From assembly GCA_965637545.1 (NCBI GenBank), contig OZ281496.1, positions 24,924,001 through 24,988,000 of the forward strand: DNA of 64,000 bases, given 5' to 3'. The stretch comes from Phallusia mammillata (Eukaryota). This document shows positions 11,276 through 49,800 of this stretch, piece by piece (position 1 is the first letter of the stretch; each line of letters starts with the position of its first letter). The translations under genes were made by a program, and so were the position numbers. Below the pieces are notes generated by a model. That model saw only the letters and a program-made list of their open reading frames with translations. It was not told where the DNA came from and did no database searches.

Positions 11276-14200
11276 CTGGAAAAAAATCATTAGTAGTTGT
11301 CACTGTGACATTCTTGTTTTGTGTGAGAGTGGTACTCTAAAACGTAAGGATATAACTTACCACTATTATGGCATAATCACCAACTGAATAGAAAATGCAT
11401 TCGGGCGGCGAACTTCCCAGTATCAATTCGGTGCCTTCTGGAGACCAACGTAGATTGATTTCATCCCATATGTTGCATTGTGTTCTTGTGGCTATTTGCT
11501 AAAAGATGCAAAGTGTTCATAATGGAACGACAAATCGATGACGAAAGATCTTTGCTGGCAGCGATTTTATGGTTTAATTTGACTTCTGAGGTTTCCAATA
11601 AGTTTGAGCTACTAGGCTTACTTGGAGTTCGTTGTCAGATGATGGCTCTATTCCTTGAACTGCAGTTTGAAGCACAAAAGTAATCTGTAGTCCTTGGGGA
11701 ATATGAGCTTCAGTCAAACCGCTTATTCTCACTGATATCACCTATACCAACAAATGTAGTTTTATGTACAGTTATGCTAGCCTTAATTGTCTGGTGATTT
11801 TCCTTGCCATGTAAACGGGTTTATAAAAACACTGTACGCACTGGTGTATTTTACATTTAGCTTGTTTCAAAAACTATAATCTACTTACAAAGTTGTTTTG
11901 CTGGCCTTCTGGAATTATGTTATCGTTTGCGTACACCATTAGTGTTAGCCTCGGTGTGTCAGTAGCACCAGTTGCACGACGTTTTCTAGCTGATGAGATT
12001 TGGTCCAACAAGGATCCAGGGATTGAGACACCGGCAATTTGTCGGTTTAAACCGGGTTCCATTAGAGGCGAGTTTTGGTCATCGAACTGATCGTTAGCAT
12101 TTCGGGTCGGCTCTGTGATCTGTAAGCTTAGTTAGTTTATATGTTTGGAAAGAAAGGGTAGCGCTATCACCGAACCCTCGGATATAGGCAATGCCACAGC
12201 AATTAGCAAGTATCGAAATAATAATTAGTTTAATGTTATTTAATCACGACACGTACTTGACAAACATATAGTTAAAGTAGCATAAAACATAACGATGTGC
12301 CGTTATCTTGTGGGGAAAACGTCACAATTGCCCATGGCACTTTACTGACATTGTTTTCTATGTTAATCTGTGTTCATCAACATACCGTCAGTTGCGTGGA
12401 GCTAGTACTAAATGTGATAGAAGTTTGGTTTTCTGGCAATGTCACCCTCTCTGCGAACGTTCGGAAAGCGTTCAACAGTTCTTGTTGCTTTTGTTGTGCC
12501 TCGTTGCTGCATGAAAAAAATCCGAGTTGATCTTTTGCAAGCCTTACAATCGCAAATTCTTATACCTCTCGTCGTTGCTCAAAGATTTGCCGATTTGTTC
12601 CGTGCTTTCGATAATGTCATACATTGTCGAAGGGGTAATCTTACAAAAAAATACAATGAACGTGATCCATGTGTATTTTATACTTACCAAAGCCGTTATC
12701 TTACCTATTTTATAGGTAAGAATATTTATGCTAAAATGCGGAGTTTACTAGATATAAATATTCGTGTCATTGTTTGACAGCACTTTTAACTCACCTCGAC
12801 TTGTTCTGGGTCAGTTTGACTCAATGCAACAAGAACATTGACCGCGTCTGTCGCTCCGTCGGTGCTAATGTTGGAAGTCAGCAATTTGATGCCTGCAATT
12901 TGATTTTTTACCACCTCCGTCGTTGCGTTTTCAGTTGCCACCTACAACATATACTGCATTTTAGGCCGACGTGGTGCAGGTGGCACTGAAATACAGCAAG
13001 TCGACTTACCGTAATTTACGAAATCGTTAAAAACTGTGTGGGACAAACTGTGATATAAGTTAGGTTTATGTTATTGTTTACGGTTTACGCTTGCTGAGAT
13101 CCAATTTGGTATGTGGCGTTTGTTTATTGCACGTTTGAATACTGCTCATCAATTTTTTATATTTTTTCGGGTTCGGCTTACTGAATTATTATTCAACCTT
13201 TTGCATGTCAGTATCGAAGTTATAAAGCCCGAAGTGGCCGGACCCACTCCCTTGCAGCCGGTTTACAGTTTTACGATGACACAACAATTGTTTTATTTTA
13301 ACAATCTACCAACCGAGCCGAGCAAATCCCCAATGGTCGCATTGCAGCCAACAACACGAGGAGTTCCAAACCTGAAGGTATTCTGCGCCGTTTCTAAGCA
13401 AACCGCTGATGCAATTGGTCGTCCTGTATGTGCAAGTAGAATATAAGTTAACAACTTCCTCTGTGACCGTATACGTTAAGGATAGTCTTACCGTCTGAGC
13501 AGCTCTCAGCTGAAACTGCTGACTGTCCAAGCAATGATCCCGGAAAGGTGTAGGTCTCAGTTTTATAGGTTATTGAAGCTTCAGCACATGTCGGATTACT
13601 TGCTGAAATCAACAATAAACAAACTTTTTCACATCACATGATAGATTTCGATTCCATAACGTGGTGCCGATTATTAACGTAATGAAATAAAAATAAAATC
13701 ATATTTCTTGTTTTACTGGAAAAACAATACCTATCACGGTTGTCAAACCCTTCTGTGTTGTTGTCTGTCTGTGCTTTGTTGTTTCCTTGCCAAATGTGGT
13801 TGGTTCGATTGTAGTGGTAGTGTGAAAGTCTATTGTGGTTGGCCGTGTTGTTTTCGACGGGGTTGTTTCTGCTTTTGGAAAACGGTTTGTAAAATACTTT
13901 AGCACAGGTTGCCGACACTCATTTAATTTACCTGCACTTTGTGTAGTGGTGGCAACAGCTGTTGTGGTTATAGTTGTTGATGTAGTTTGTACATCCGTCT
14001 TAGTGGACCTTTCTGGTGTCGTGGCTGTTCGTTGCGTCGTGCCTTATAACAGATATTAGTCAACAGAACGCATTTATTTATGACGCTTCTTTTTCTATCT
14101 TTTGATCTTTACTAGAAACCGCTAAAGTTTAAATAGAAACAGTCATCAGTGCATTGATGTTTGTTTGCATTATTTATATGTTAGGTTAAGAATAGTAGTG

Positions 14201-17200
14201 GTATGTATTTTGTAATCTGTTCACCAGTTTGTTTTACTTTTATTTCAAATGCACTACCTCAGAGTTGTAAGTCGGGCCGGGATTTTCGGGCCTGACTTTA
14301 CACTCTGTGTCAGTATTTTTTAATTTAATAAATTTAACCAGCTAAGTAGGCAGTTGCTGGACCTGACGTAATGTCAAACAGCCCTAAACGCCTTGTTCGA
14401 GACCAATTGTCTGTTGTGTTTGTTGTCTTGGTCTTTTCTGAGCTTGTCAATCAAACTTTCGGGCCTAAACGGACTCAAAAACGATTCGGGTTCGGGCCGG
14501 GTTCGGACTCTAATTTCAGGCCCGTTTACAACCTTACACTAGTTGCCATAGTCTACTGGTGTGGAGTGTACCAAGTTGGCCTTCGAACACAGCAGTTTAA
14601 AAAAGTGTGGAGATTGCATATAATAAACACTACAAAGGCGGGTCGTACCTGGTTTCTGCAGGCGTCTTTCACATATGTATGCCCTCTCAAACGAGCATCT
14701 TCGTGTTGCCCACTTGAAATTGGTGTTCAGTATGACGCATGTTTCAGCTAAGTTAATGGACGGTTCCCCCTGATCAAATTGCTCTTGCGAAGGCATAAGC
14801 CGGTCTCCATCACTCCACGTTAAGTTAGATTCTCCGTTAAGTTTTGAAAGCCCGAACCATGCATTTCCTGCTTGATGCAAAACAATTTGTGTCAAAAATC
14901 TCAATAGAATGTTTTTAACAGTTCCATTTGCTACGATTTAGCATCTAACACCTCCAACACCTCCTAAATTTTACATTTAGTATAGCTTTGTTTTGTTACC
15001 AGAATCGTCTTTAACATAGTCATGTATGACAAACGACCCACTGGGGACAACTTACCTCTGAATGTGAGATTTTGTTTCAGGAACTCTGTTATACGGGTGT
15101 TTTTGATGGTTGCAAGCGTTGCGTTCAGTTTCTGGCAAAGTTGTTCAGCCTCAAAGAAGCTTTTTGGATCTTCACGAATAAGGTAACTCGAGTATTCGAA
15201 CTCCTTCCACACGTCAACTGAAACCATAATTGTTTGCTTATACTATTGTTACCAAACGTTCAAATGTAAGTTTTATTTCCACTGATTTTGGTAAAGTGGA
15301 TAAACGTACGATGCTGCAGCAGTTACTGCGTATTTAACGTACAACCATAAACTGGAAATTAAGGCTGGTATATGATATTTTGGTGGCTGTTCGTTTGAAA
15401 TGCATTCAAACTAAACTAGCTATTTAATATGCTGCATCTTTTTTTAGCTATTTAATATGCAATATGCTTTATTGCAATTAATAAAACATGCTACCTGGCG
15501 GAGCTTGAGTTGTTGTAGCAACCTCAGCTTGTGTTGTGGTTTCTTTTTTACCTGCTGGAGAAAAATATTTCAAATTAGTTTTGCATTGCTTTAATTGTTT
15601 TTTACTGGAAACATACCTGTTGTTGCTACTGCTACAACGCCAGTAGTGGTTGTAGGGCCTGCTGTTGTTTGATCTACAATACAGACTCAAAATATTTACG
15701 GTTTGTGCCAAAACAAAAGTTTGCAAAAACAACTTTACGTGTAGAAAATATCGTGTAACTTATGCGTGAATTACAGTTGCCACTTGCCTTCTAGCGAATA
15801 AGTTGTCGACGTTGTTGTTGTAGGAACCGGTTCTGTAGTAGGTTCAACGCCAATAGTCGTTTCAAATTCTTGCGATCAAAATATTTTTTTTGTTGGTATT
15901 AATATTAATGTGGAAGAAAAGAAAAAGACGGTTTTATTAGATTTGTTTTGTTTTTTTATTGTCACTCAAAGCGTGTGAATCGACTCTAAAACATACTATG
16001 ATTTCATTGAAAAGCATTGTAGGAAAAATGGGTTCAAAAATGGTATATTAAATAGAATTCTTGACGTTCCATAGGGTACATAACGGTTACCTAGTGTGAA
16101 TTTATGTGAAGCCATTAGAGTTCGATAAAAAGTCCATGACCATTCAACTTGTTTTGTTAATGTATATTACTCACCTGCGGTTTGGGTAGAGGTTGCTGTG
16201 GTTTCCGCAACGTAATCGTTTGTGGTTGTGACTTCCGCTGTACATATTAAATCGAATACAATTAATGTTGTAAACGTCAAAATCAGTTGTTAAATTTAAG
16301 GGCGAGTGCGCGTGCAAGAAGTTTAGGCAACTTAATAAAGAGCTTCATGGTTATTGGTGGTTTTAAACCAAAGCAATACAAGTCCTGGCAACATCACTGC
16401 TATGTTTTAATTGTGAATGTAAAGATGTGTAATCTAGTCCAGCAGGTATACGCAGTTACAAATAAATTTATCGTTGCCGGCGTTACAGCTTACCTGATGA
16501 CGTTGTTTGATCTGCTGTGGTGATGATCACATTTTCATAGGTGGTTGTTTCATATTCTAATACAAGACAGTTTAATTAGTGGTTGTGCCCAAACTTATGT
16601 CAACATGCTTATAACTTGCCTTCACTGTCAGTTGTGGTCAAGAAATTCACGTCCGTTGTTGTATCAACATCTTCAAACGAAAATAAAATATTAGTCAAAA
16701 ACTGCCAAATCAAATTTACTTTCTGTGCTTTTGTGCTATATCAGGGGTAGGCAACCTTTTTTCTACTGCGGACCGTTGTTGAAACTGAATTATTCTCGCA
16801 GACCGACCTTCAAAAAACTACAAATATTTAGTAACGAAAACGCCTAAATTAAGTTATCATTCCCGGGATAAATGGGCAAAATGTTTTTAAACACTTAACC
16901 TGAAAAATTATACGGCCCACTAGCGAACTCGTCGCGGACCGGCGGTTGCCGACGACTGTTCTATATTGCATAAAATAATAAACCAACTTAACTGTTAGTT
17001 ATACGTATGATCATTAAAACAAGTATACACTTACCGTCTTCATCGGTTGTAGCAGCAAAGTCATTGACAGTTGTCGTTTCAAAATCTTAAAACAAAATGA
17101 CATTTGGACCAAAATTTAATATCGCTTTTTGTCGGTAATTGGTCATGCTAAAAGGAAACTAAGCGAGTTTCATTGACTAAACGTCTACAATATCTTGACT

Positions 17201-20200: not shown

Positions 20201-23200
20201 AAGAATAAATCTTATTGCTTCATCTGTCTTGACTATCACAAGTGATCCACCTTCTGCTTGGCAAGCATCATTCGATGCCGTGAAGTTACGACGTATTGTA
20301 CCAAGGTAGAACTCTGTGTTGCCTACTCTCACCCACTCTGGTGTTGCAGAGACAGGTTGGTTACGTTTCGCCAAAAAGATAGACCACATAGGAATTCATG
20401 ACGTGAGAAACAAAATTTATGTTTGTTTTTTTCTTTTTTTCTGTCCTATTTGATTTGAGAATACCAGGCTGATGACTCTTACACAACATAGTTTGCTTCT
20501 ATGTTCAGCAAGTATTTTTTGCTGTTCAAATGCGTGTAGCGTCAGATACCGGGCCTGTATTTAGTGAGGATGTTTAGCGGAAGGTAGTGTAAGTTTAGGA
20601 ATGACTTTGTTATTTTAATTTGTGGTTGTCGGAGTTGCGTCGGTTTTATATGCTGTGATGGTACATGGCAGTATAGGCGTTTCGTTGCACATTTAAATAA
20701 TGTTTACGACACCTAATTCTTGTTCTACCTAAAACCTACCGTCTGGTGTTACAATGATGTTTTGTCCAAAACCAGTGGTAAACCGTTGGGTAGTATCTGA
20801 AAAAGGCGGTCTTAATCAAAGTAAAAAATTGATGAAGGTACAACGGTTTATCGGTCACTACATAGTTTATAATTTTACTATCAAACATCACAGTTTGGTA
20901 ACCTGTGGCTTGTGTTGTGGATTGTAATGCTGTTTCAGCTGCAATGGTGATTTTAGTCGTCTTTTCTGATGTACCTGCAGTGGTAGCTGCGTTTGCCTCT
21001 TCTGTTGTGGCTGCATTGAAATCTTTGGTTGTCTTCTCTTTTGTTGTTGCAGTGCTAACGTCAGTTATCTCTTCGGTTGTAGTTGAGCCTATTGCTTCAC
21101 TTGTAATATGTGTAGTCGCTGCAGACGTGGCTTCGGTTGTTTCTTCGGTTGTCGCTGCAGTGGTGGCTTCGGTTGACTCTTGTGTTTTGGTTGCAATGGT
21201 AGCTTCGGTTGTGACTGCAATGGTAGCTTCGGTTGACTCTTCGGTTGTAGCTTCATTAGTGACTTCGGTTGTCTCTTCGGTTGTGACTGCAATGGTAGCT
21301 TCGGTTGACTCTTCGGTTGTAGCTTCATTAGTGACTTCGGTTGTATCTTCGGTTGTGACTGCAGTGGTAGCTTTGGTTGTAAATTCTGCCATAGCTTCAG
21401 TCGTGACTTCGGTTGTGACTGCAATGGTAGCTTCGGTTGACTCTTCGGTTGTAGCTTCATTAGTGACTTCGGTTGTCTCTTCGGTTGTGACTGCAATGGT
21501 AGCTTCGGTTGACTCTTCGGTTGTAGCTTCATTAGTGACTTCGGTTGTATCTTCGGTTGTGACTGCAGTGGTAGCTTTGGTTGTAATATCTGCCTTAGCC
21601 TCAGTCGTGACTTCGGTTGTCTCTTTAGGTGTAGTTGAGCCGATGGTTGTCATTTGTGTTGTCGCTGCAGTGATGGCATCGGTTGTAATTTTTGTTGTGG
21701 CCGTAGTGATAGCTTGGAATGGAATCGTTTCCGTATGTTCAGTTGTAAATGCCGTTGAAGGCGTTGTTGCATATTCCCGTACAAGTTTATCTAAATGCAA
21801 TAGTTGAGTTTTTTTTAAGTTTACCACTTAAACAAGTTTTTTTTAACAATATTCATTTTATCGAAAGTTTAACGTTAAATTAGCAGGGAATAAATTATTT
21901 ACCAAATAGCGCAGTCCAATTGATCTCAAGAAAGTTCCCATTCTGCTGAAGTGTGTCTCTTTTTCTTTTTGCCACTATTTGCGATATTAGTACAATAAAA
22001 TGGTCGTTAAAGATATTTTGAACCGCGACAGTAACATCCAACGTACTGACGGACAGTCTTATTTTGCTCGGAGGGTCGCGAAACCAACGCTTAAAATGTA
22101 TTGTTACCACACTATTAGAAGCGTAGTGAGTTATTATTGTTGTTCCATTAATTCGACCTGCAAAAACATACAACGCAGTGTTATTTGGCGGGGTTTTAAA
22201 AAGTAAGGGCAGATGTGTTGTTTTTGTGCTTTTTTTCTGCTGATGACTTGCAAACTATTGTCAAACATATTTCTTTTAGCGTTTTTTTGTTGATTTAAAA
22301 GGTTAACAACGTAATTACCGTAATAAGCTTTCCAGTGGACTATTGGGCCTGCACTGTGCCAATGCCTGCCTGGAATATCGGTTCTGAAAACTGAAACGTT
22401 GAATCCGCAGTAATCGATCTCAACAAAATCATACGAGAAAATCAAATATTGAGGCATGTCAGTCGTGTCAAACTGTATTTCTATTTCCTTCGGTAGCACG
22501 TCGTAACACTCGTCAAATTCTTGTGTAGCATATTGGATCGCGGATAAAAGCTTTGGCTTTATATCAAACCTGCCAAACTGAGACTCTGCGAATGCAAAAA
22601 CCGCGTTTAATGTCGCTATAATGTTACAAAAAAATCATTTTAATACAAACAAAATATTTGACCAAATGAGGTTAGTAAAATGTTTTTGTGTCGATCTTTC
22701 ATTTAAAAATAAGCGTTGAAAGAATGCCCAACCGCTTGTACATTTAGTGTTGATGATGCAATGATTCTGTACAATACAAGGATTTTGGAGCACAGGGGAA
22801 CAAAGTTAACGAACCATAGTGTTTCGCACAGCTTCTTGCCTGGAAAATATTACCTTACATTTTCAGTCGCGCAGTGACGAGCCTAATGGTCAGGGGTGGG
22901 GAAGCCGTATGCGGCCCGCTTGCCTTTTTAATGTGGCCCGCGTCACAATTTTGGTACAGCATAAAACAAAGCATCGAAAAACAACAATAAAATGTTTATG
23001 TACAATTTACTTGAAAAGAATTCGACATTTCCACATTTGTCGCCAAACTTATTAAAATTGCCACACATTCAACCACTTGCTGTGTTTGTGACGTAACAGT
23101 CACTCGATTGTCTCTCCTTGCAGTAACAAATCATTTGCCATGTGGTGTTAGTTTTAAATTGATTTTAGAGGTATTAGCGTGGATCCTTATATTGTTACAT

Positions 23201-26200
23201 AAAATATATTCGGTATAACGGAGCTAGGGTGTTCCAGAAAGAATGGACAGATTTTAGTCGAATTAAGTGATAAACCTGTATGCCTTGTTTGTTGCAAACA
23301 AGTAACAGCAAAGAAAAAAAATTTGGAGCGATGAAATATAAAATCACTTGTGTGCTTAGGGTATTACATGGAATTTGAAAATAAAAAAATATTTGGCCGG
23401 CCCGAAAATGTTGTGCAATTCATGCGGCCCGCAGTACTAAGTAGGTTCCCCACCCCTGCTATAGGTAAACAACAAATGTATGTGCATTGTGTATCCTTAC
23501 GTTTCGGGACTAGTCGAGAATACTTGGTTGTGGCTACTTGAGTAGTTGCTGTTGTCACGGCGGAAGTGATTCTTGTAGTTGCTGTTTGTTCTTCTTGAAT
23601 ATAAAGGTCTGTATGTACCAGAATATTTTATTGTATACATGTAGTTTACGTGCTTTAACTTTTTAACAACGTGTCGGAAATAATTACTAAAAGGATGGGC
23701 TGCAACGAAGATATTGATGTATGTAATTAAAAATTAGTACCGCTTTATGATTTAATGCCTTTTAACAAATGGTCTAAAATGTAAACTAGTTGCTACATTG
23801 CACTTCACCTAGCTCTCATCTCGCGTTTGAATGCACAATTTACCCCACTTAGCTAATATAACTTATGCGCCTTAACTGTTTGGTATGTCACCACGTTTTT
23901 ACACAAGTACCCAATCTTACCGTATAAGGCAACCCAGTCGAAAGAGGCTACACGGATTGGAAGAATTTCTCTTTTTCTTTTTCCCACTGGGACTTGGACT
24001 GTAAATCGGTCATTGAAGATTTCGTAAACCTCAATGACGGACCCCAAAGTTAATGTTATGTAGACTTTGTTTGGTGGATTCGTGTACGTTTTTGGAAAAT
24101 ACACAGTTCCCACACTTCCATTAGGAATAGGCAAAGTAACACTTCCAGAAACTTTACCTTTAAAAAATATGTTTTGGTCTTAGCTTGTTTAGGAATGTTG
24201 AATTCAGTTGATAAGCACACATAGATATAGATAGGAAAAACATATTTTTTGGTTTGTTTGTTTATTGCTGTTCACGGTGGTAGACCCAAATGCGTAAAGC
24301 TCAAAACGACTTGACCATTGGTCTCCTTATCTTCTTGCAAGTCTGTTGGATCTATTTTACTTTAGCAACCCAAATACAATGTATTTACGTAATTGTTTTG
24401 TTTTGTACTATTCGCAGACATGAACTTGAATAGTAAAGTTTATAGAGCTCTTCTGGCAAGTGTTTTTATTTCGACGTCCTATACAGGTCGCCTTCATCCG
24501 GGTAAATAATACTGAATGCGCGTAGTACAGTGCACGATAAACAAAGGAAAAAAGAACGCAAACACGTCGAAAATAGGCGTCGAAACGTCGGAATAAAAAT
24601 ACTTGCCAGAAGTCCCGACAAACTTGATACCATGCCTGACAGCAATAGCTTATATAAAATAGCGATAAATTACCTCGAAATGCACTTACCGAAATAAGCT
24701 CTCCATACAATTGTCGGTCCAAATTCTTGCCATATACCGTCCCTAACATCTGTCCTGAAAACTGAAACATTCACACCGCAGTTGTCGACATCCAGCACAT
24801 TATAAGAGAACGTGTATGTGTCTGGCATGCCGCTTGTGTCAAGCTCAATTTCAATTTCCTTTGGCTTTACATCATAACTCTCGTCAAACTTTAGCGTAAC
24901 ATACTGGATGGCAGCTGGGGGATTTGGAAATACCTTGACTTCGCCTCTTTGGGGTTCTAAAAAACGTTACATTTACATGAAAGCGTGTTTTGTTGGGTAA
25001 AACATAAAAGTGGTCAGTGACACATCATACGAGTGTAGAATGTCTATGACTCACATCAATTGCGTTGTTTTGGGTCGGGACGTTTTGAAGTATATAACGC
25101 CTTAACCCAAAATCCTTTATAACCCAAATGGCCAAAATAATATTTTAAGCACTTTTATACACCAATAGTCAGTTGTTGTCTTTTTAAGTATTTCGTAGTT
25201 TTTAGTGAAATTTTGTACCTTTTGGGTAATTTTTCGGACTTGCAGTTGTGGTAGGAGCCCAAGTGGTCGTTTCTACATGTAATTATATAGAAAATCATAG
25301 CCATTATGTTTGTATTGCAAGTTTCGAAAAGCAAACACAGTCTATCTGTCCAGGCTAGGGTAATATTGAAAAAACTGTCCCCTACCGTTTGTTGGTGTGC
25401 TTGCGGTGAAATATGGGTATAAGTCGTCTTGAATAGGTGAACAACCTGCAAGAGATATTGTTATTTTTGTTTATGTTGTTCCAGCCAACTTATTTCCTGC
25501 TACATGCAACATTCAGTTGTGCTTGTTAGCATTATTACGGTTACTGGACAGTCGATGGATGCCAATTTTTGAGTTGTGAGAATTGCTGTAAATTACGATA
25601 GGTGTCTGCAAACTTACAAAAACTTTGACTTCAGTTCTTGGTTGGAAAATACTGTTTTTACACATTTGACGTAAAGGTGTGAAAATCATAAACGTATATA
25701 CAGTCAGTTACCAAAGTCTACTTTCCACTCCAAACTCAATGTTGTGTTTTGCCATCCTGCAAAACCGGTTGTCTGTGTATCGATTTTTTCAACGGCTGCT
25801 TCAAATCCGCATTCTTCATAGAAAATCACATGCGCTGCAAACTCCGATTCATAATTTTGCACATTTAAGGTTGTGCGAAGTGGGCGGTTTGCAAAACACT
25901 CTCCATAGAATATGTAGACACTTTTAACTCCACTTGTACTTCCGTCGAAGTCACTGACATTCATGATTCCCGAAATTGGTCCTACCACGTGAAATATATG
26001 TAGACAGTTGCGTGAGTCGAGGTGCTTAGTTTTTAGGTCGTAAATTCAATATTATGGTGCTAAACATAGTATTACAGCAATGGTGTGGCGATTTTTATAA
26101 AATATTTGTGGTTTGTTTAGTATTTCTCAGTATTTAACATATATGTACCTTTCCCATTCTTGTCACGAAACGTGCAGTTTTCTTGTGGGTCACCTGTAAC

Positions 26201-34115: not shown

Positions 34116-34147
34116 TTTTGATTGGTTTAGAAAAAAAGAAAAAAGGG
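34116..34147 (+). promoter_or_regulatory. Promoter-like element, copy 2
   Basis: ttttgattggtttagaaaaaaagaaaaaaggg has the same ATTGG-to-G spacing as copy 1; followed by a CAA|GTGAGT donor at about 34270. Confidence 0.5.
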
Positions 34148-36250: not shown

Positions 36251-36350
36251 CACTTTGGACCACTCACACAAGGATCACTTTGGACCACCCACACAAGGAT
36301 CACTTTGGACCACCCACACAAGGATCACTTTGGACCACCCTCACAAGGAA
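36251..36350 (+). repeat. 25-bp minisatellite, 4 copies (cactttggaccacccacacaaggat)
   Basis: Units start at 36251, 36276, 36301 and 36326. Confidence 0.9.
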
Positions 36351-37619
36351 CACATGGACCGCTCACACAAACACCACACTCCACACACATACCACGAATA
36401 CAGTTGGACCATATTACACAAGGACATCAATGGACCACATTACAAAAAGGAGCACATTACACAAACACCGCTGTATATGGACACAACATACACGTGGTGT
36501 TTTGTTGATCGCTATTTTTTAAATAAATTTATTTTTTACATTTATTGCTGTTTGTTAAGAATTGTATTTCTACAATACAGAAATTATATAGCACTGTAAA
36601 ATACCTGTAATTGCGGAAAAGACGTTTTATACATAGATTTGCTGTGGTTTCTGTTGATCGCTATTTTTTCAAATAAATTTGTTTTTTACATTTATTGGTG
36701 TTTGTTAGAAATGATTTTACCTAAATACACGGTTTCGGGAAAAATAGAAATCGTAGCATTTGCAAAAATAACGTTTGGTCCAGATAAAAGTCAGTCAAGC
36801 AGTATCCTGCTGTTTGTGAGTCTAAAATATTGAATACTGTCACACAGTACGCCAGGCCCATTGAAGGCACTATACCGAATCAGCCGGTCACCAAGCATTC
36901 ACCACCATATGGCAAGGCGTAGGCTAGAAAAATCTGTCACACAGTTAACAAATATCTTACTTTCAACTGAGATCGTAGGATTTTTGGTTTCGAGTACCTT
37001 GACTTGAAATCATGGCACGCCAGGCCTATATAATTGAGGCGTTTTACCGAATCAGCTGGTCACAAAGCATTCACGTTGTAGCAAGGCGCAGGCGGTAGGA
37101 TTTGAACACACGATTTTGATTTCAGAAACTACGGATTTTTAATTCCCTTTCAAAACGGCATGCTATGGTTATTACCTGTCAGCTGGAGAGGATCGGCGAA
37201 AAGAACGCATTATAGAAAAAAACGTGTTGTGACACATATTACAGAAAATATTTACGGTTCTTCATTTACGTTGTGCATGCGTTTCGTGTGTCTTTTCCGT
37301 AAACGCTTTTTATGTATTTTTTGCAATCCAAACCATTATTTCTTGTGTGTTGCATGTTTGTGCAATGTGTGCTAGGTGCTGTTCCTTGACATGTTGTATG
37401 ATTTGCGTTTCCATCGAATATTCCATGTGTTCGCTCCATGTGCAGGTGTTTCCATGTGTATCCGTGTGAGTGTGTGTGAGTTCCTGTGAGTGATATCCTT
37501 GTGACGTTTGTCGAGGCCATTCATTCATTCCTGGAAGACGAGTTCCTTTGTTGTGACCTCCTGTTGCTGCCAGAGTCCATTTCGTTTCCATACGAAGTGG
37601 GTTGGGTTTTCCTTGGAGA

Positions 37620-39570
37620 TTCCGTGTTGGCCGGGGTTCGAACTGTGTCCGGAGGATCGGGAAGCTGGAGACTTACCTCTACACTGCGACTGCTGACAAT
37701 GATTGAATGTTTAAATGGTGTTTATTAGTTTTGACTTGCGTACCGACCTTGTGAGTTAAAATTAAATATTGAAGAGCATTGTAGGTTAGAACGCTTTCTT
37801 TACCGGGGTTCGAACAGCATCCAGAGGATGGGGAAGCTGGAGACTTACCTCTAGACTGCGACTGCTGACTATCAACTGCGGTTTAAATGGTGTTTATTAG
37901 TTTTGACTTGCGTACCAACCTTATGAATTAAAAGGAAGTATTGAAAAGCATTGTAGGTTAGAGGTGAGAACGCTTCCTTACCTGGGGTTCGAACAGCATC
38001 CAGAGGATCGGGAAGCAGGAGACTTACCTCTACACTGCGACTGGTGACAATGATTGAATGTTTAAATGGTGTTTATTAGTTTTGACTTGCGTACCAACCT
38101 TGTGAATTAAAAGGAAGTATTGTAGGTTAGAACGCTTTCTTACCGGGGTTCGAACAGCATCCAGAGGAAGGGGAAGCAGGAGACTTACCTCTACACTGCG
38201 ACTGGTGACAATGATTGAATGTTTAAATGGTGTTTATTAGTTTTGACTTACGTACCGACCTTGTGAGTTAAAATTAAATATTGAAGAGCATTGTAGGTTA
38301 GAACGCTTTCTTTACCGGGGTTCGAACAGCATCCAGAGGATCGGGAAGCAGGAGACTTACCTCTACACTGCGACTGGTGACAATGATTGAATGTTTAAAT
38401 GGTGTTTATTAGTTTTGACTTGCGTACCAACCTTGTGAATTAAAAGGAAGTATTGTAGGTTAGAACGCTTTCTTACCGGGGTTCGAACAGCATCCAGAGG
38501 AACGGGAAGCAGGAGACTTACCTCTACACTGCGACTGGTGACAATGATTGAATGTTTAAATGGTGTTTATTAGTTTTGACTTGCGTACCAACCTTGTGAA
38601 TTAAAAGGAAGTATTGTAGGTTAGAACGCTTTCTTACCGGGGTTCGAACAGCATCCAGAGGAACGGGAAGCAGGAGACTTACCTCTACACTGCGACTGCT
38701 GACAATGATTGAATGTTTAAATGGTGTTTATTAGTTTTGACTTACGTACCGACCTTGTGAGTTAAAATTAAATATTGAAGAGCATTGCAGGTTAGAACGC
38801 TTTCTTTACCGGGGTTCGAACAGCATCCAGAGGATGGGGAAGCTGGAGACTCACCTCTAGACTGCGACTGCTGACTATCAACTGCGGTTTAAATGGTGTT
38901 TATTAGTTTTGACTTGCGTACCAACCTTGTGAATTAAAAGGAAGTATTGAAGAGCATTGTAGGTTAGAGGTGAGAACGCTTCCTTACCTGGGGTTCGAAC
39001 AGCATCCAGAGGATCGGGAAGCAGGAGACTTACCTCTACACTGCGACTGGTGACAATGATTGAATGTTTAAATGGTGTTTATTAGTTTTGACTTGCGTAC
39101 CAACCTTGTGAATTAAAAGGAAGTATTGTAGGTTAGAACGCTTTCTTACCGGGGTTCGAACAGCATCCAGAGGAACGGGAAGCAGGAGACTTACCTCTAC
39201 ACTGCGACTGGTGACAATGATTGAATGTTTAAATGGTGTTTATTAGTTTTGACTTGCGTACCAACCTTGTGAATTAAAAGGAAGTATTGTAGGTTAGAAC
39301 GCTTTCTTACCGGGGTTCGAACAGCATCCAGAGGAACGGGAAGCAGGAGATTTACCTCTACACTGCGACTGCTGACAATGATTGAATGTTTAAATGGTGT
39401 TTATTAGTTTTGACTTGCGTACCGACCTTGTGAGTTAAAAGTAGGTATTGAAGAGCATTGTAGGTTAGAGGTGAGAACGCTTCTTTTAGCGGGGTTCGAA
39501 CAGCATCCAGAGGATCGGGAAGCATGAGACTTACCTCTACACTGCGACTGGTGACAATGATTGGATGTTT
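37620..39570 (-). repeat. Tandem array of 12 units (about 160-180 bp), each with a tRNA-like A-box/B-box cassette
   Basis: ggggttcgaac recurs at about 37632, 37805, 37984, 38144, 38317, 38477, 38639, 38811, 38990, 39151, 39312 and 39491. The minus strand reads gcagtgtagaggtaag...gttcgaaccccgg. Confidence 0.85.
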
Positions 39571-39631
39571 AAATGTCGTTTATTAGTTTTTGCTTGTACA
39601 CAGACTTATGCAAAAAAAGGACTTTTAATTT

Positions 39632-39708
39632 GGTGCACGATGGGATTCGAACGCAGGGCGATGGGTTGTGGGACAGCACCTTTACCCCTACACTACACCA
39701 CGTAACCA
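39632..39708 (-). pseudogene. Degenerate tRNA-like or SINE-head sequence related to the array unit
   Basis: Minus strand ggttacgtggtgtagtgtaggggtaa...gcgttcgaatcccatcgtgcacca: A-box and B-box at tRNA spacing, imperfect acceptor stem. Confidence 0.55.
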
Positions 39709-39774
39709 ACAGTGAACAATAAAGTGACCTAGACAAGTTTTTAGGTGTTTAAACTTAAAACACAAAAGTTTGGA

Positions 39775-39850
39775 TGCTTAGAGCGGGTGTTGAACCACCA
39801 ACCAGTGGATTTGTAATCCAAGCTCATCACCACTTGACCACAGGCGGCAG
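39775..39850 (-). pseudogene. Degenerate tRNA-like sequence (anticodon-like loop TTACAAA in a TGGA/TCCA stem)
   Basis: Minus strand gcctgtggtcaagtggtgatgagcttggattacaaatccactggttggtggttcaacaccc. Confidence 0.45.
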
Positions 39851-40984: not shown

Positions 40985-42740
40985 GTTAACTTTAAATATC
41001 GACTGTCCGCTGGAGGTTGCCTGTCAGATGAAAGCCTGTAACAAAACAACACTATTTGGAGTCGCAACAATAGGTAGATAACTGGGCTGATACTTCTAGA
41101 AAATATATGTAAGTTTATTTGCACATAATCACAAATTTTAATTACTATATTTAAAGCTTCTAACTAACGCTAAGCTATACGTGACGTTCCTGATGCAACA
41201 GACAAGCTTTGATGGCGAAATAGTTTTTGTTTAGCAATTAGGGCCTAACAATAGATGCTGAAACGTACATTGCATTCTTTAATTGGTACGTATTGTATGT
41301 CGAAATAACAACGAAAAAGAATTTACTTGAAATCTATACAGATCCACATTTCCCCTCTTGGTCTGCAAGAAAGAAAACACGCCATTTCACTTTGCTCTGT
41401 AGTCCGTTCTGCAAAGAAAATTAAATAGTTAGCAGTATATAACGTATTTATTGTGACACCTAGCTACTGGTAGGAAAAAGGCCAAGTAAACTTTTAATGT
41501 CATAGTCCAAAACTGTGGAGTTTATTAACGTACAATCTTAAAAATATTTGGATAGATGTCAAAATGTACTTGCCTGTTAAATAAATTTCCAAGGTAGAAG
41601 TAAATTTCATCGAAACCCTTTCAATTTTCTGTCTGTTTCGGCTCAAGGTTTGTTTATCGTTCAACAAAGAGCATCTAGAAAAACATTTTAACAGCAGTAT
41701 TGTGTGTGTGTTGAAAATTACGGTATCGGTGCAAGTAGTCTACTTACACTTTAAAGCGCTTCAGACTACCAGTATTTGGATAGTGCAGTCATGGTTCCAA
41801 CTGTTGGCGCCACATTTTTCTAGAACACATTTTTATTCGTGAGATAAATGCTTTCAAGAGGATTTAAAACACTACTTAGTAGGTAATAACATTTCTGACT
41901 TCCGGCACATTAACCAACTAATTTTTTTTTGTCCGAAGGGGGTATGTAACCTAGCTTACTTTATTTAACAATTAAAACTACCTGCATTTGGATTGTAAAA
42001 TCTTGGCTCCAACTCAGGGGACGCGACGTTTTTTCTAGAAAAGAACTCAGTCAACAACCTAATTGTCAAAACTTTTCAAACGAATTAAAAATAAACAAAC
42101 TAAAAGTTATAAGTTCGACACACCTGGTAGGTTCAAGAAAAAAATATTCTGTTGCATGGCAGTTTCTTGGTACGCAAATAGTTAATAACTTCATTTTAAT
42201 ATTTTTTTATAAGGCACATGGGGATTTTACAATTACCACATTGCAGGTTTACTTTACAGCATGCGTTAAGTTTATTAGCATTTCAATGCTATAATAATTT
42301 GTTTTAATATTGCATAAAGCACTTTACAGTATGTGTAAACTTACTTTGATCTCGGTAGAGAGTTTCGGTCCAACCTTAAACTTGTCCGTGCTTTGGCGTC
42401 TTGATCTACTACGTCGAAAACCTGCAACAACAAAACTAGAAGGCAGATACTTGCAACATACTTCGCAGTCAAGCATTAACTTCAAACTCAATTATAAACT
42501 TAATTGTACTGGGTATTTGCGCAAAAGGAAAGTGAGGTGCACCCTCAATTTACCTCTCCGTTTATATCACAATACAACAAATAATGATACAAAATTACCA
42601 ATTATATCATGAACAACAAATATAACCTTAAGCTTTCAGTGGTGTCATTCCAATGTCAAAACGCACGGACAAAAAAAACGTCCTCTCTCCACAGCAACTA
42701 GTGACAAATGGAACACAACACAAGTCACTGCAACTCTTGT
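40985..42740 (-). ncRNA. Candidate multi-exon ORF-poor transcript 3
   Basis: Exon-like segments with AG and GT/GC boundaries at 42345-42421, about 41748-41820 (stops in all three frames), about 41574-41683, 41340-41410 and 40985-41037. Confidence 0.3.
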
Positions 42741-42741
42741 T

Positions 42742-42775
42742 CCCTTTTTTCTTTTTTCATTCGACCAACCAGAAA
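42742..42775 (-). promoter_or_regulatory. Promoter-like element, copy 3 (opposite orientation)
   Basis: Minus strand ttctggttggtcgaatgaaaaaagaaaaaaggg, preceded by attgg, ccaat and tgacgt motifs; followed by an AAG|GTTATA donor at 42627. Confidence 0.5.
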
Positions 42776-43821
42776 TTCGGTTTTGCAACGTCATTGGCCC
42801 TTAAAAATCAACCAATCGTAAGGTTGATTGCATAATTTACCAAATCTTTGCCTGGAATGTGCCCCAAACTATACATAGTTTTTAATAAACTCGTAATGAT
42901 TTGCACATGGTTGCGATAAATGTTATCCACCTGACAGAAAAAATTTTCTCATAACATTTGCGTTAATTTCGACATAGATAAGATTTTTTTGGCTGTTAAA
43001 ACTAAGTAAACAGTTTGATGTTTTGTAAAGCTAACGATGTGTCTTTTTAAAGCCTTTGAGATTTAACAAGAGCTATTGCTGTATTATTGAAAATGTTTCT
43101 TAAAATGTGATTTAATTGCACGAATATATAATTGTGACAAAAACATATCTAAAAAATTGTGCTGTGATCATGGAGTATCCTGTTTTTTAAACTGAAACAT
43201 GACTTATGGCTACGTAACACGCAGTTAATGACTAAAACTTATTACTCAACAATTGTTTTACACCCAAAAATCATATTTTAAAAACGCCCTTTAAGTCTGG
43301 TTAAAATATTGCGTTCTTGCCTCCGATTAAAACCAAGAACGATTAGTAGGTAAAGGTTTTCTAAAACTTAAAACCACTTTAATTATGTAAAACCTTAATA
43401 GAACTTCAACAAAACCACGCTTGGACAAAGGTCTCATGATTAATCATGCATTGCTGCAAAACTGCACAACCAATATCAACAAACATTTTATTCTGAGTAC
43501 AGTGAAATGTGACATGAAATTCCACACAGAAAGGTGAACAAACTGTGAGTAACAAATTGCAAGTCAGTACCTTTATTGTTTTATCGGATTAGTTTCCGTA
43601 CATCTTAACTGTACCACAAACTGTGATGATTAAAACATCTTTTGTCTTTGCAATCATCTTATCTGTTAATTTATAAAAACACATGTATTAATTAAGGGCC
43701 GTAAGTGTCATTTAACAACCACCAAAACACCCAAAACATTCATATATATTCAAAACTGGGTATACATCCTATATACAGTTTACACACTTAAGCAATGTGT
43801 GCTCTTTCCATAGTAAAAAGC

Positions 43822-46800
43822 CTATGCTTTCGCTCCTGGCCTCTCTTCTGAAACATGTTCTCTCGACTCCTCCACCACTCCTTGCTCACTTTCCTCCTCT
43901 TTCTCTTTTCCTTTCTTCATTTCATCTTTTTTCTTGCAGCAAACAAAGGCGATCAGCATGGCTCGAATCACGGCTGGGAAGAAGCAGTACACCAGAAACA
44001 TGACGACACCCTGAAACGAGAAAAACATTTTGCTGTTTCGTCAGTGGCACTGCCAAGACTTTTGGTTAGTTTTAGAGTTTTAATGTGGTCTGCACAATTT
44101 CATTTCAAAGCATAACTTTTTTCCAGCGGGCATGGGCACACTACGTACAATATATATATATTTATTTATATTACTTGACGTTTATGTGATCCCTATTCCT
44201 GCAACGTTTATTGTCTTTGTGCCGTACTTTTTGATTAAGCCCCATACACTTTAGGCTTAGGGGTAGTTTTGTCAAGAAAAAATACCCGCAACAGTTGCTT
44301 TCTAAATTTTGTAAGTGCTTGTGCAACCGCTCCAAACGCATTAATTTTACAGTTATAGTCACACAGAGTTTTAAACGGGACACAGATGTATGCGAGTGTT
44401 AAGTCAGTCCTGAATTAAACACGCTTTATTCAAACTACAGCTCCGTCTCGTCTTACAACTCTATGCAACTCTAACCAATCTTACCATGATGCCGTTCAGC
44501 AGGCCAAACATCCACGCACAACCGTCTAATTGTGATTGATTGGTTGCGTGCAACATCACAAATCCAAAGACCCATGCTATCGCGAAGCCGAAAAGCAAGA
44601 GAACAGAGAAAACAAAATCCAGCTTTGCATGTCCGTGCGGGTGTTTTTGAGGTTGCTCCGGTTTCTAGGTGGAAAATAAATCAGTTCTGTTAGTTTGCTA
44701 TTTGGTTCTTACAGCAGATTGTAGATATGCCTGTTATGGTTACGACTGCCTTTATGCATGACATTACTTAAACAAAGAGGGAATTGAACTAAGAATTTCA
44801 TGTTAATGGACGCAATACTTGCCACAAAGTGTTTTGTTGTAGCGCATAAACAATAACCTGCAATTACTCATAACGATTGCATTGCGCACCCATATAGAAA
44901 ACCGGGTGATCGATACAAAATAATTTAAACCATATTGATTCTATTCAAAAGTTTACGACTTTGGCTGAATGCATCTTACAAATAGCTTTTTTCCTTACCG
45001 GTCTTTTGCAGCACAGAAGCCTGGCCAACACCAGTGCTACAAGGATAATCACCAAGACAAGCGACAACATCACCGGTAAAATGAAACCCACTGAGAATGA
45101 GGAGCCATGAATCCAGCACATGTGTCTTGCCACGTATGTTGACACAAAGAAGATATCGTCTGACAACAAAAAGTCACGAAACTTGTAAGTATCTCATTCC
45201 CCAAAACGCCATTAAATTTGGGAAAATAGTTTTAGCCAAGGGTAAAATATAGAAACGAAAGAGAAACACATTACGGAACGGGTTTCAAACAAAGTGGTTG
45301 ATTATACATGCTGCAACTTATTTGGGGGTCATGTCGCTTAAAATGGCATTTTCAAAGCTTTTACTTCAGGGGTTCTTAACCAGGGGCATAAGACCTGCGA
45401 CTTTGAGATGCAAGGATACCGACTTAGTGAGGTGCAGTAGTAATAATTACTTCACGGAAAAACAGTAGTTGCAAGAACTACTTGATTAATTCGAATAGGT
45501 TCCAGCAAGAAATAAATGTTAAGAACTGCTGGCATCATCGCATAGCCCGCTTTACCTGGTCTGTAAAATCCGTTGTCGAAACTAATAGCAACGAAGGCAG
45601 TGATCAGTACGATGAAGAAAGGTACTATGTAGCAAAGAGCCGCGATCAGAGCCGGTGATTTTGCACCCTCAATCTAAAAAAGATAGAGTTGTAGTGAAGG
45701 CTTAGTGATAAAAAGAGGGCAGAGAAACTGGTTGACGCTGAAAATAAATTCACTTTAGTATTTAAATTCTGATACAATTGTTATTGCTAACTCATATACA
45801 AAGTGCGAAACAGAACAAGGTCATCGTTAAGTTCTAAAACATCAAAATATTAAGAACTTCTAAAAAATCCCCTAACGGCCATAATAGAGGCGGCAACGAA
45901 GCTTGAAAGCAACCCAAACCCTAATATGTTACTATTTAACAAACTCTCAATAATGCGCTTTTTGGTAGTAAACAAAAAAAAACGATTAGCCAGTCTTTAC
46001 ACGGAAAGGAGAGACAAAGTTACCCAAAAAATATAAATTTTCAAGCATAAAATGACGCATAACCGGTCAAAACATTTTCGTAAGCGACTTACATTTAGCA
46101 TAGCCTCGCTTGCATGGTAGATATTTGCAACAAGCCAGAACCAGGCGACCAGAAAGAAGTACTGCATGAATATACCAGAGGCATAACAGGTAGTTCGAAT
46201 AAAAACCTCACTGGTTCCTGTATAGATCTCGTCGATTCCCGCAATAAAGGCCACGTTGCAGATGAACAAAATCACGCAGATGTTACAAACGTACACGGCG
46301 CTTGGGTGCTCGCGAAGTTTTCTGCAAGTAGAATGCAAGTTTGAAAAATCGTATTGCACTAACATTGTGGCTAACACAGTAAACCTCGGTTAAACCGGAT
46401 TCGGTTAATCCGACAAAACTTGACGTATAAATGATTCGCAATGTGGCGAGGCTTCAACTGATCGACATCGGTTAATCCAGATCTTCACCTAATCGGGACT
46501 AATTTTTTGGTCCAAACGGGTCCTGGTTAACCGAGGTTTTTACTGTACATACGTTTTTGATCGGGCTTTTGCTAAACACACGTTAATGTAAGAAATGCGG
46601 GCAAAGGTATTCAAGTAAAGCGACAACCTTTTAATTGATTTTTAACAACATACACATTCGTAAGTCAAATCAACTCATTGGTACTGGATGGTTATGTAAG
46701 TTTTGCTGATTTCGTATTCAACTTACGTGATAAGCAAGAAACACAGGAAGGTTATCGCCAGAGCTATGATACAGATAATGAAGCCGAAGTAGGATGGACC

Positions 46801-46836
46801 GGTGAGAACAAAAGGGGCATCCATTATCCTGTGTTC
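43822..46836 (-). CDS. Gene C 7TM region
   Basis: TM1 SYFGFIICIIALAITFLCFLL; TM3 CYASGIFMQYFFLVAWFWL; ECL2 MCWI; TM6 LLLFGFAIAWVFGF; TM7 AWMFGLLNGIMGVVMFLVYC. Confidence 0.9.
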
Positions 46837-49800
46837 CTGTAACAAAACACTGATTGAATTGGCAGAACCAGTGTTTTTTTAAGGTGTTTTTCAAGTTTCT
46901 CCAGCGGTTTCCCAAAATTTGGACATGGCTATTTTTGGTATTTAAATGAAACACTTGCGGTCTCTTAAAACTACTTAGCGGTCACCCAAACCAAACCTTA
47001 AAAAAACCCTGGGCAGAACTGTTGTGTTTTCGGTGGGATTTTATTTGACATATATGTCTGATTTAGTTTTAGACTACAATCCGAAATGTGCAGGCTGGCT
47101 AGTGTTGCAAACCGGCCTAAAATTGGTCTAAGCGCGGAAGTAAAAGGCAAAACGGATTGTTGTTGTTTTTTCAAAAAAACAAAAAAACAGCCCGAGTTAG
47201 GCTCGCAAGTTAGGTTACCAAACGGAAAATTAAGAGGCAAATGTGAACTAAATCAAGCCATATTCGTTTAAACCGAACGAGACACAAATAGCCCGGCTCA
47301 ACTTAAAACTCTAGTGCAGGCGTGTTTCTAATGTAAAAATTTGGTACACCGTTTATCAGAATTTAATAAATTTTAACATACAGCCTTTCTGTTTTAAAAT
47401 TTTACACACCGAAAGAGCACAAATCAAAATACCAAATTTTGACATTTTATTACTTACAACAACTAGTGAGTAGTCAGTGACTTGTTTGCAGATGCACATC
47501 TGTGGAAAGCTGTTGAGAACATAGGAGCAATCTTGAGCCGTCCATTGGCCCAGTGCCGTTTTATAGGACTTGCACTGAGTTCTTGTCACGTATTCCTAAA
47601 CCAAGTTGGCTGTTGTCATTATATTTGATTCTCGTTCAATAAATGGCTTCACAAAGCGGTGACTTTGAAATGATAATGCTATGCGCAATTGGAGCAAATG
47701 CTCTTGTAAGTACGGTTTTACAGATAAAAAATATTTGCAGCAAAATGGTAATGCAAAATGCCGTCTGTGGACAATGTAAGCAAAACAATCAACCATAAAC
47801 AAAAAATGTCATTGAGGTCTGAAATTTATGCTTTTCTAATTCTACCAGCGTTTTACAAAGGCAATTTTCTGACATTTTTACAGCCTGGTCAGACTATTTT
47901 ACCTTGAGAGTTGTGTTGGGAAAAAGAACAGCAGATTGTTTCTCCCGATTTGTGAGATAAATAATGGTGACGGGAATGTTCGAAGTGGTCTTGTTTCCGG
48001 TTGTAACACTGGTCGATACAATCTGTTAAAACAAAAATTTTGGTAATTAGATATCATCGACAGGAGTTGATGTAGGAGTTTACTTTTTACGAGTTCATGG
48101 TATCCATAATAATTAAAATGTGGAAAGATGCTTTAGAACACTATATACGTTTCGGCAAATGCTTACGCCATCATCAGGGATATGAAAGATGCTTTTTGAT
48201 AAACAAGACTTTAAGAAATCAAGGGCAAATCAGTAATTTGCAATGTCATATCGTTTTAAACACTACTGTCATATCGTTTTAAACACACTACAGATGTTTA
48301 ATGTATTGAAAACACACTACAGATGTCAACTGTTTTGTTAAGTAAGGGCGTCAAAAGATTACTTTTCTTTGGAAACTTTTTATGCGCACTTGACTATTTT
48401 AAACGTAATGTAAAAATATTGTGTAAAAAAAAATATATACAAGCTCGACACCCTGTCCGAAGTTCAGTTTAGACACATATGTTTCCCAACAAACACCACT
48501 GTTATGCTAGGTATAGGCACAGCGCAAAGCCAAACATCATAACTTCTGAATCCTCATGTGATATGAGCAGCAGCACTTACAAACTGTGACGTGCCAGCTG
48601 GAGGAAAAAGGCCCGGGTCCAGCAAAATCCAAAAGCTCATCCGAACTGTGCCGGTTGTTGATAGAGCTCGCTTTACTCTCGCTTTTGCAGCCTGATCAAT
48701 TTCCTTTCCAGCTATACGCACAATGACCACCTGTTTGGGGAAAGTATATATTATACAATTTGAAACCTTCATAAATTGAAAATCAACACCGTGTATTTGA
48801 TTTGTATGATAAAATAAATTTTAAACACAAACTGTGATGTTCTTATTTTAAACAGTGTACAAATAAATATAAATGTCAACATCAGAAAGTACATCAGTAC
48901 GCAGCAGATAGATAACACTGTTTTGACCTATAAGGTCTTATCTTTGCAGTGTATCTTACCATAAGTGATTGAGCGTATGCGTTAATATTCCACCTTATGG
49001 TAGTGCAGTGTATATATTCTGACATCCCTATAAATTGTGCTTAGGAATTGTTATTTGGGGATTACCTGTTGACCGGTTTGGGGGTTAACCAATGTACTGT
49101 TAACGTCTTTGTATTTGTTGTTTGCATCCAATTGTACATCGGTCACCTATAAAGTTGGTTGTCGTTAGGAGGAAAAAGTTTCAAAACAGAACTGTAATAA
49201 AGGTCTAATAGAGCGTATTTAGTATCAATCTGTCATAAAATTGATGTTTTCATTGGAAAATTATACAGTATCATTTACAGACATTGCAAAATTTAATGAA
49301 AAATGGTTAAAATTACAAAAAGCAATGGACATCAAAACAAAAATAAACGTTCACCTGCACACTCGTCTTATTGGTCTTGAGACTGATAAAGTTTTGGTTG
49401 GCTGGCATCACAACGCGATCAGTTAATTTGCGTAGACCAGTTTTCAGTTTTTGTTTGCTAGTTTTCGCGCTGGGAAAAAAACAAAATGTATTTAAACCAT
49501 GGCACAACACACCAACAACAGTACTCTGAGCCAGCATCTAAAACACTCCATGGTCTGCAAACGTATTCGCATTAATACAGCAATTCAATTAACGCTATCA
49601 ACTTAGTGCAACAGCAAAAATGCACTTACGTTGTTGTGTTTCCTAAAGCTGTTGATATTTTATCTGAGCTTACAATGGCATCAAAAAGAGTGGATGGTGC
49701 GATCTGTCAACAAATAAAAAAACATTAGCTAACGGAAAACCCCATTTCCAATAAGCAAAAAACGTAAAATATTTTCGAGTAACAAAATCAGTCAGTTAAT

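Follow-up and report, generated by a model that had tools for sequence, protein, structure and literature searches.

In the present work a furin-type cleavage motif, R-x-[KR]-R, is examined in two receptor genes of the ascidian Phallusia mammillata. [quoted passage not shown] The interpretation favoured here, to which a probability of roughly 55% is assigned, is that the motifs RKRR in gene B and RVKR in gene C are selected convertase sites of the furin type, situated in a flexible loop of GAIN subdomain B and independent of self-cleavage at the GPS. The main evidence for this interpretation is the placement of the two motifs at the same point of the GAIN domain, the recurrence of the motif in the same loop of other receptors, and the pattern of residues that is retained at each position of the site.

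Position and structural setting of the motifs

The motifs of B and C stand in an identical register, D-Q-x3-A-R-x-[KR]-R-A, which follows a conserved strand (IPGSxLD, with IPGSLLD in B, and IAGKEID in C), and in both receptors 107 residues lead from the P1 arginine to the -1 residue of the GPS. The motif belongs to the GAIN domain and precedes the first transmembrane helix (TM1) by about 125 residues, on the extracellular side of the seven-transmembrane (7TM) receptor. Both sites present the R-X-[K/R]-R consensus followed by a non-basic, small or polar P1' residue (RKRR-A in B, RVKR-A in C). They are encoded by different codons, and are therefore not the product of recent gene conversion. The motif coordinates and the peptides of A, B and C quoted in a preliminary description of this DNA are exact, in frame and on the minus strand, and the equivalent GAIN-loop position which it had claimed for B and C is borne out by the common register and spacing. 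On the minus strand of 144 kb the pattern R-x-[KR]-R occurs 15 times in open reading frames (ORFs) of at least 50 residues, two of these occurrences being in real receptor exons, and within the coding exons of the seven cluster genes the B and C sites are the only ones.

The structural setting of the motif was modelled for gene C using P0011, a Phallusia mammillata database protein of 1086 residues (CAB3229160.1, “CD97 antigen-like”) whose last 529 residues are identical to the gene C model. An AlphaFold model of P0011 residues 479-765, computed from a seven-sequence alignment, has a mean predicted local distance difference test score (pLDDT) of 69.6 and a predicted template modelling score (pTM) of 0.73. 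The top 11 Foldseek matches of this model in the PDB are all aGPCR GAIN domains (E 4e-10 to 3e-5), and include the structures of Gpr126, BAI3, GPR110, BAI2, ADGRL3, CL1, CD97, CELSR1 and GPR56, so that the region is, as modelled, a GAIN fold directly N-terminal of TM1. For gene B the same fold is suggested by homology exon by exon. A sequence-profile search of the PDB gave weak matches (E 0.3-2), three of four of which are latrophilin GAIN domains at the strand that follows the loop; this strand aligns weakly to “VKVVFILYNN” of the latrophilin-1 GAIN domain (PDB 4DLQ), an alignment which is supportive only.

In the gene C model a strand (residues 145-150) and a short helix (152-160) precede the loop that contains RVKR (162-165), a further strand (171-180) follows it, and pLDDT falls below 50 at residues 163-168. 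The model of P0014, a relative from the ascidian Clavelina lepadiformis (pLDDT 76.4, pTM 0.77), is arranged in the same way, RKKR (167-170) falling within a low-confidence stretch at 165-175. In these two models the motif overlaps the only stretch of low pLDDT between confident strands, low pLDDT being a mere proxy for exposure. The site is thus placed between two strands of GAIN subdomain B, and not in a SEA-domain loop like the S2 site of ADGRG6, which it would nevertheless resemble in its action. Loops of GAIN domains vary greatly in length (PMC11697300), and the motif loop of one of the upstream cluster receptors is extended by a mucin-like insert, rich in Thr and Pro and some 70 residues long (L011:3011-3328; C3:24867961-24876160, minus strand), an indication that the loop tolerates insertion and is probably exposed.

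Recurrence and conservation of the motif

When the site exon of gene B is used alone to search the Phallusia genome, it finds itself and a weak match to gene C, and nothing else. A paralog profile of the exon detects 48 copies of this exon type, and a survey of the loop covered about 40 receptor loci, with about 9 of the 48 exon copies lying outside it. Besides B and C, the motif is present at L017 (RTRR, then N) and at L018 and L040 (RARR, then N), all three of which have the GPS triad Q-L-G; at L029 and L030 (RRKR, then A), which have the canonical GPS C-N-H-L-T; and at L028 (RNKR, then E), whose GPS is also canonical. Sequences that lack the motif have either a gap in the motif columns or a decayed remnant, such as the “FKRN” which stands in its place in L035. 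In all, five separate clades have R-x-[KR]-R in this loop, where about 0.03-0.05 would be expected from the composition of the exon (Poisson probability about 1e-9, if the clades are independent). On a maximum-likelihood tree of the site exon and GPS exon the motif requires at least four changes of state on branches with good support: C falls with the clade of A-type receptors and L011, B stands apart, the L017 group is the sister of the motif-less L025, and L029 and L030 lie among the receptors whose GPS is canonical. Should the motif be ancestral instead, what matters is that it was retained while its surroundings changed.

Among 1.84 billion representative proteins a profile search found 26 matches. 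Apart from C itself, those with the motif at this point of the loop are P0014 (canonical GPS; RKKR, then N) and three proteins from metagenome or European Nucleotide Archive (ENA) contigs, P0017 (RRKR), P0018 (RQKR) and P0022 (RRKR), whose best identity to the Phallusia genome is 39-48% and which are therefore not Phallusia genes; the best Phallusia matches of P0018 and P0022 are exactly L029 and L030. A further search with the GAIN region of P0014 added three full-length paralogs from Clavelina, at a GAIN identity of 42-50%: P0036 (RRKR), P0037 (RKKR) and P0035 (IKKR, dibasic only), each with a canonical GPS. Some relatives lack the motif, among them a protein of Styela clava and an ADGRG7-like one of Acanthaster. 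The site is common to two ascidian orders in the canonical clade, and there it must therefore be older than any loss of the GPS. Conservation in orthologs, by which the preliminary description proposed to judge the sites, is of a divided kind: the motif is kept across species in other clades, but for B and C themselves the word-based protein searches found no orthologs. Weak GPR128_N signals, together with the “G7-like” names given by the source databases, point to an ascidian expansion of ADGRG7-like receptors.

The motif is kept while its flanks diverge, as may be seen by comparing L029 with L030, the members of the L017/L018/L040 group with one another, and the four Clavelina paralogs (of which P0035 is dibasic). 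The residues retained were counted in 13 non-redundant sequences anchored on P1. P1 is Arg in 13/13 and never Lys, P2 is Lys or Arg in 13/13, and P4 is Arg in 12/13 and never Lys, while P3 varies freely (V, A, T, N, Q and M all occur) and is basic in 9/13. P1' is small or polar, no basic residue occurs from P1' to P5', and there is no conservation from P10 to P5. The insistence on Arg at P1 and P4, the freedom of P3 and the lack of basic residues at P1'-P5' together constitute the grammar of a kexin-type convertase rather than that of a charge patch. Ser and Thr recur just after the motif (A-T-G-A-T in B, A-L-S-T-T in C, and A-T-S, T-T-A and A-V-S-S in L029, P0018 and P0022), and could be a regulatory feature.

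Points against the favoured interpretation

Several observations weigh against reading the motifs as functional convertase sites. The P4 residue is Ile in one Clavelina paralog, P0035. Word-based protein searches, made with the ORF of the gene B site exon and with the GAIN region of gene C and directed at proteins of similar length, gave nothing apart from C itself, and hence no ortholog of B or C. The two structural models are of moderate quality and come from shallow alignments. O-glycosylation near convertase sites can block cleavage, and the Ser and Thr residues just after the site could, if they are O-glycosylated, have this effect. Gene B is without RNA support in the runs searched and without a database entry, its GPS region is badly degraded, and it may be silent or decaying. 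Finally, what is shown comprises the motif, its register and its pattern of conservation, the GAIN fold, a loop predicted to be flexible, the transcription of gene C and the convertase genes of the genome, while cleavage itself is inferred.

Alternative explanations

The alternative that survives best concerns gene B only. It supposes that the gene is silent or decaying and that RKRR is a relic without present function, which is judged rather unlikely. The RNA runs contain only 0-2% of the sequence words of the gene B core, compared to 23% for gene C, no database protein matches gene B, and in its GPS region a Cys pair has been lost and Pfam detects no GPS domain. These signs of decay must be set against the integrity of the core itself, in which 12 of 12 exons are open and the splice phases and transmembrane motifs are conserved. 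In addition, the RNA runs are few, come from a handful of studies and have no record of tissue or stage, so the absence of gene B from them is weak evidence.

A second alternative is that convertase cleavage has replaced autoproteolysis, in the sense that the site arose or was kept because the GPS died and that ectodomain release or exposure of the tethered agonist (Stachel) was handed over to furin. This is the switch from self-cleavage to convertase cleavage that the preliminary description had proposed from a comparison of the homologous segments of A, B and C. Its premise that a dead GPS lies downstream of both motifs is correct, since the triads S-V-G in B and Q-V-T in C both lack the catalytic His. 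(Cleavage-deficient aGPCRs are known, and a dead GPS does not exclude membership of the family.) The GPS exons, which were located using local hidden Markov models, give no Pfam GPS match in gene B and one of 18.3 bits in gene C, under the cut-off of 22.5. Gene A cannot, however, serve as a self-cleaving control, because its triad is V-L-A and is also non-canonical. The autoproteolysis triad H-[LIM]-[ST] is absent from A, B and C alike, the four upstream cluster receptors have triads of the forms K-L-A, I-L-A and V-L-A, and the catalytic His is missing in all seven cluster receptors.

The motif does accompany a GPS without His in B, in C and in the L017/L018/L040 clade, and precedents may be cited in the similar idea voiced for human ADGRF4 and in the cleavage of the GPS-dead ADGRA3 by other proteases. 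Of the seven GPS-dead cluster receptors, however, none but B and C contains the motif, it is absent from nine GPS-dead clades, and L028, L029, L030 and the four Clavelina receptors (P0035 with its dibasic form) carry it beside a canonical HL/T GPS. Counted by clade, the motif occurs in 3/12 GPS-dead clades and in 2/8 canonical clades, the latter becoming 3/9 when L028 is added. An association of the motif with a dead GPS was therefore rejected (Fisher p = 1.0 for 3/12 against 2/8 clades), and the age of the site in the canonical clade, where it predates any GPS loss, points in the same direction. As a general account, replacement of autoproteolysis is considered distinctly unlikely. The substitution idea may still apply in a weaker sense to B and C alone: as neither GPS has its catalytic His, a two-chain receptor could arise there only through cleavage by a convertase.

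It is also conceivable that the basic cluster is kept for a non-proteolytic role, such as the binding of a sulfated glycan or acidic ligand, or as a trafficking signal. Basic patches in ectodomains often bind glycosaminoglycans, and the high proportion of basic residues at P3 would suit such a role. A charge patch would, however, be expected to interchange Lys and Arg, contrary to the positional counts given above at P1, P3, P4 and P1'-P5', and the loop is predicted in both models to be flexible and not part of a surface, with the result that this explanation seems quite improbable. The last alternative, that the motifs are neutral and reflect chance or an inherited basic stretch in a fast-evolving loop without function, can appeal to the high variability of the loop in length and sequence, to the complete absence of the segment from many paralogs, and to the fact that, given the basic residues, the motif reappears in 1.5-8% of trials in which the residues of each loop are shuffled, but it is very unlikely in view of the five clades observed where about 0.04 are expected and of the retention of the motif within clades and across species at 40-50% identity despite divergence of the flanks.

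Expected consequences of the proposed cleavage and comparison with known receptors

If the motifs of B and C are indeed selected convertase sites that act independently of the GPS, the consequences may be outlined by analogy. The cut would be made by a convertase late in the secretory pathway, on the C-terminal side of the P1 Arg; genes for such enzymes are present, the P_proprotein domain (PF01483) scoring above its cut-off at at least four loci of the genome. The two chains would stay joined through the GAIN beta-sandwich, as do the furin-cut SEA domains of Notch and ADGRG6, and since the GAIN domains of B and C contain no cysteine on the N-terminal side of the site, only non-covalent contacts would join them. 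Later the pull of a ligand could part the chains and release the adhesive ectodomain. For B and C the convertase cut would be the sole way to a two-chain, dissociable receptor, while a receptor whose GPS is canonical would be cut a second time by it. Cleavage and all of these consequences are proposed by analogy, and the expectations of fragment association, shedding and agonist exposure are drawn specifically from the furin-cut SEA domains of ADGRG6 and Notch (PMC6954182).

A broader proposal, which is put forward tentatively and is regarded as fairly unlikely, is that a convertase cut in the GAIN beta-sandwich provides the ascidian ADGRG7-like receptors with a second, genetically separable way to a dissociable receptor. 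On this proposal the members with a canonical GPS would be three-piece receptors with a free GAIN fragment of about 107 residues, in the GPS-dead B and C the cut alone would license ectodomain shedding and the force-dependent exposure of the tethered agonist, and the system would be a natural solution of the Notch S1 type within a GAIN domain.

One of the two closest known parallels is human ADGRG6/GPR126, which has a furin (S2) site of the form (R/K)-X-K-R in its SEA domain, whose cleavage was demonstrated with the R468A mutant and which is conserved in mammals and birds, missing in zebrafish and found beside GPS cleavage (PMC6954182). The present sites resemble it in that a furin-type motif occurs, in a lineage-patchy manner, in a loop of a folded module of the aGPCR ectodomain alongside GPS autoproteolysis. 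The ADGRG6 fragments stay associated until they are pulled apart (PMC6954182). The two cases differ in that the ADGRG6 site, for which cleavage has been shown, lies in a SEA domain far upstream of GAIN, while the sites described here are predicted to lie inside GAIN subdomain B. Notch provides a similar comparison: at its S1 site furin cuts an exposed loop of the heterodimerisation (SEA-like) domain (as summarised in PMC6954182), and a convertase cut in the loop of a compact domain to give a non-covalent, force-separable heterodimer is what is proposed here by analogy. Notch is nevertheless a different class of receptor with a different fold, and the step that follows in Notch is cleavage by ADAM and gamma-secretase rather than exposure of a tethered agonist.

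The idea that a convertase could substitute for autoproteolysis, presented as unusual in the preliminary description, is not new, because a furin consensus within the GAIN domain of human ADGRF4/GPR115 has been hypothesised to play this part (bioRxiv 10.1101/2022.07.14.500097). ADGRF4, the other close parallel, is likewise a receptor without a canonical GPS that has a furin consensus inside GAIN, but its motif is in a different loop, about 30 residues before the tethered agonist instead of 107 residues before the GPS, and it was described in a single human receptor without conservation analysis, whereas the present motif recurs in many paralogs, including those with an intact GPS. The observation is in this sense more solid than the preliminary description could know, and less novel as an idea. 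Processing of aGPCR ectodomains by cellular proteases is also known from ADGRA3/GPR125, which has a divergent GPS (SLS) and is not self-cleaved and yet sheds an N-terminal fragment (PMC13631675), and from BAI1, on which a convertase/MMP-14 cascade acts (Cork et al. 2012). ADGRA3 differs in that metalloproteases (ADAM10/17) are implicated and there is no furin consensus, and BAI1 in that its sites are outside the GAIN domain. Putative prodomain sites are recorded for CELSR/Flamingo. The aGPCR repertoire of Ciona includes 24 unclassified receptors without clear vertebrate orthologs (PMC2396169).

The field has yet to settle how an aGPCR that does not cleave itself at the GPS becomes activated. 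Where convertases are known to cleave aGPCR ectodomains, they do so outside GAIN (ADGRG6, BAI1), and within it such cleavage is a suggestion made for ADGRF4. A literature search revealed neither a conserved convertase motif described for this GAIN loop nor one described for ascidian receptors. What is added here is a convertase-type site inside GAIN subdomain B that is conserved across paralogs and two ascidian orders, in GPS-competent and GPS-dead receptors alike. The receptors are tunicate-specific, and the immediate impact of the result is moderate, but the family offers a set of matched natural constructs, with and without the motif and with an intact or a dead GPS, for the study of two-chain GAIN domains, shedding and tethered-agonist signalling.

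Gene models and genomic context

The models of the GAIN-7TM cores were derived from splice-site scoring together with the intron phases conserved among A, B and C, and the spliced cores of all three genes are open throughout, with no stops. The assignment of B and C to the aGPCRs (class B2) follows from the exons that encode TM2-3, which match the Pfam family 7tm_2 (cut-off 20.6 bits) at 31.8 bits in gene B (exon 10772-10978) and at 24.1 bits in gene C. Searched one by one, the short exons of gene B match neither a GAIN nor a GPS family in Pfam. For the whole of P0011 Pfam lists neither 7tm_2 nor GPS at E<=0.01, which marks gene C as divergent; the 7tm_2 scores of its relatives P0004, P0014 and P0037 are 87-110 bits.

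The gene C model is well supported by contigs of a single study, taken from four runs that are probably RNA. They confirm each of the ten introns that lie within 43800-49500 (from 44010 to 49355), every junction predicted between 44010 and 48581 is spliced GT..AG, and the exon that contains RVKR (48730-48581) is present in spliced contigs of all 4 runs with zero differences. A 27-codon exon (49146-49066) is known from the RNA contigs and P0011. In gene B, whose site exon is without RNA support, the acceptor chosen (12119) is the best of several candidates, all plausible ones being upstream of the motif.

Table 1. Positions of the receptor genes, their core models and the exons and motifs discussed in the text (window coordinates)
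Feature	Position	Strand	Description
Gene A	about 7300 to 2165	minus	
Gene B	about 29700 to 9350	minus	
Gene C	beyond 64000 to 43825	minus	
Gene B motif	11976..11987	minus	RKRR (P4-P1), then A-T-G (P1'-P3'); in-frame translation, aligned with motif-bearing paralogs
Gene C motif	48668..48679	minus	RVKR (P4-P1), then A-L-S (P1'-P3'); residues 640-643 of P0011; in RNA contigs
Gene B site exon	11889..12119	minus	Strand IPGSLLD, RKRR loop, strand RLTLMVY; from splice scoring and phases conserved in A, B and C
Gene C site exon	48581..48730	minus	Strand VVIVRI, short helix, RVKR loop, strand VRMSFWILL; ends RNA-confirmed, secondary structure from model
Gene A site exon	4499..4717	minus	Same strands, shorter loop, without basic motif
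Gene B GPS triad	11379..11387	minus	S-V-G, in GPS exon 11361-11498; without His or Ser/Thr nucleophile, one Cys pair lost
Gene C GPS triad	47476..47484	minus	Q-V-T, in GPS exon 47458-47595; without catalytic His
Gene A GPS exon	3937..4071	minus	Triad V-L-A, non-canonical
Gene B core	9350..12941	minus	12 exons, 598 residues, no stops; GAIN helices, GAIN subdomain B, 7TM
Gene C core	43825..50105	minus	GAIN and 7TM; C-terminal ~600 residues of P0011

The ectodomains of B and C had both been described as very large arrays of lectin modules. This holds for gene B, in which Pfam detects at least three Lectin_C modules (gene A has one), but not for gene C, whose only lectin match is a sub-threshold one to H_lectin. 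Two homologous modules of the gene B ectodomain contain the sequence K-R-K-R on the minus strand, at 23970-23981 (“VGKRKREILP”) and 21958-21969 (“VAKRKRDTLQ”), where sister modules have K/V-R-T-D. These sequences are dibasic and are not strict furin sites (P4 is Lys), and to judge from the sequence they could be extra processing sites or a mere variant of the module.

In gene C the start of P0011 lies in the ORF 56165-55890, and RNA contigs of 2.9-3.6 kb reach past 49469. Upstream of the N-terminus of P0011, at 57000-64000 on the minus strand, there is an array in which module exons that are almost identical to one another recur about every 505/1007 bp. At 46856-47046, in the intron between the GPS and TM1 exons, the RNA depth is 1300-5400, compared to 10-30 on the exons, and many RNA contigs there end in unrelated sequence; the stretch is probably an element that is either highly repeated or highly expressed.

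Outside the cluster, about a dozen relatives with a “TRTQC”-type GPS exon have x-L-A or a similar triad instead of H-L-T, and together with the cluster they make up a large aGPCR subfamily of this ascidian that presumably lacks cleavage competence. In the gap between genes B and C, at about 37400-39800, tandem repeats of about 161 bp form an array with repeated ORFs of 66-67 residues, which is probably a satellite and not coding.

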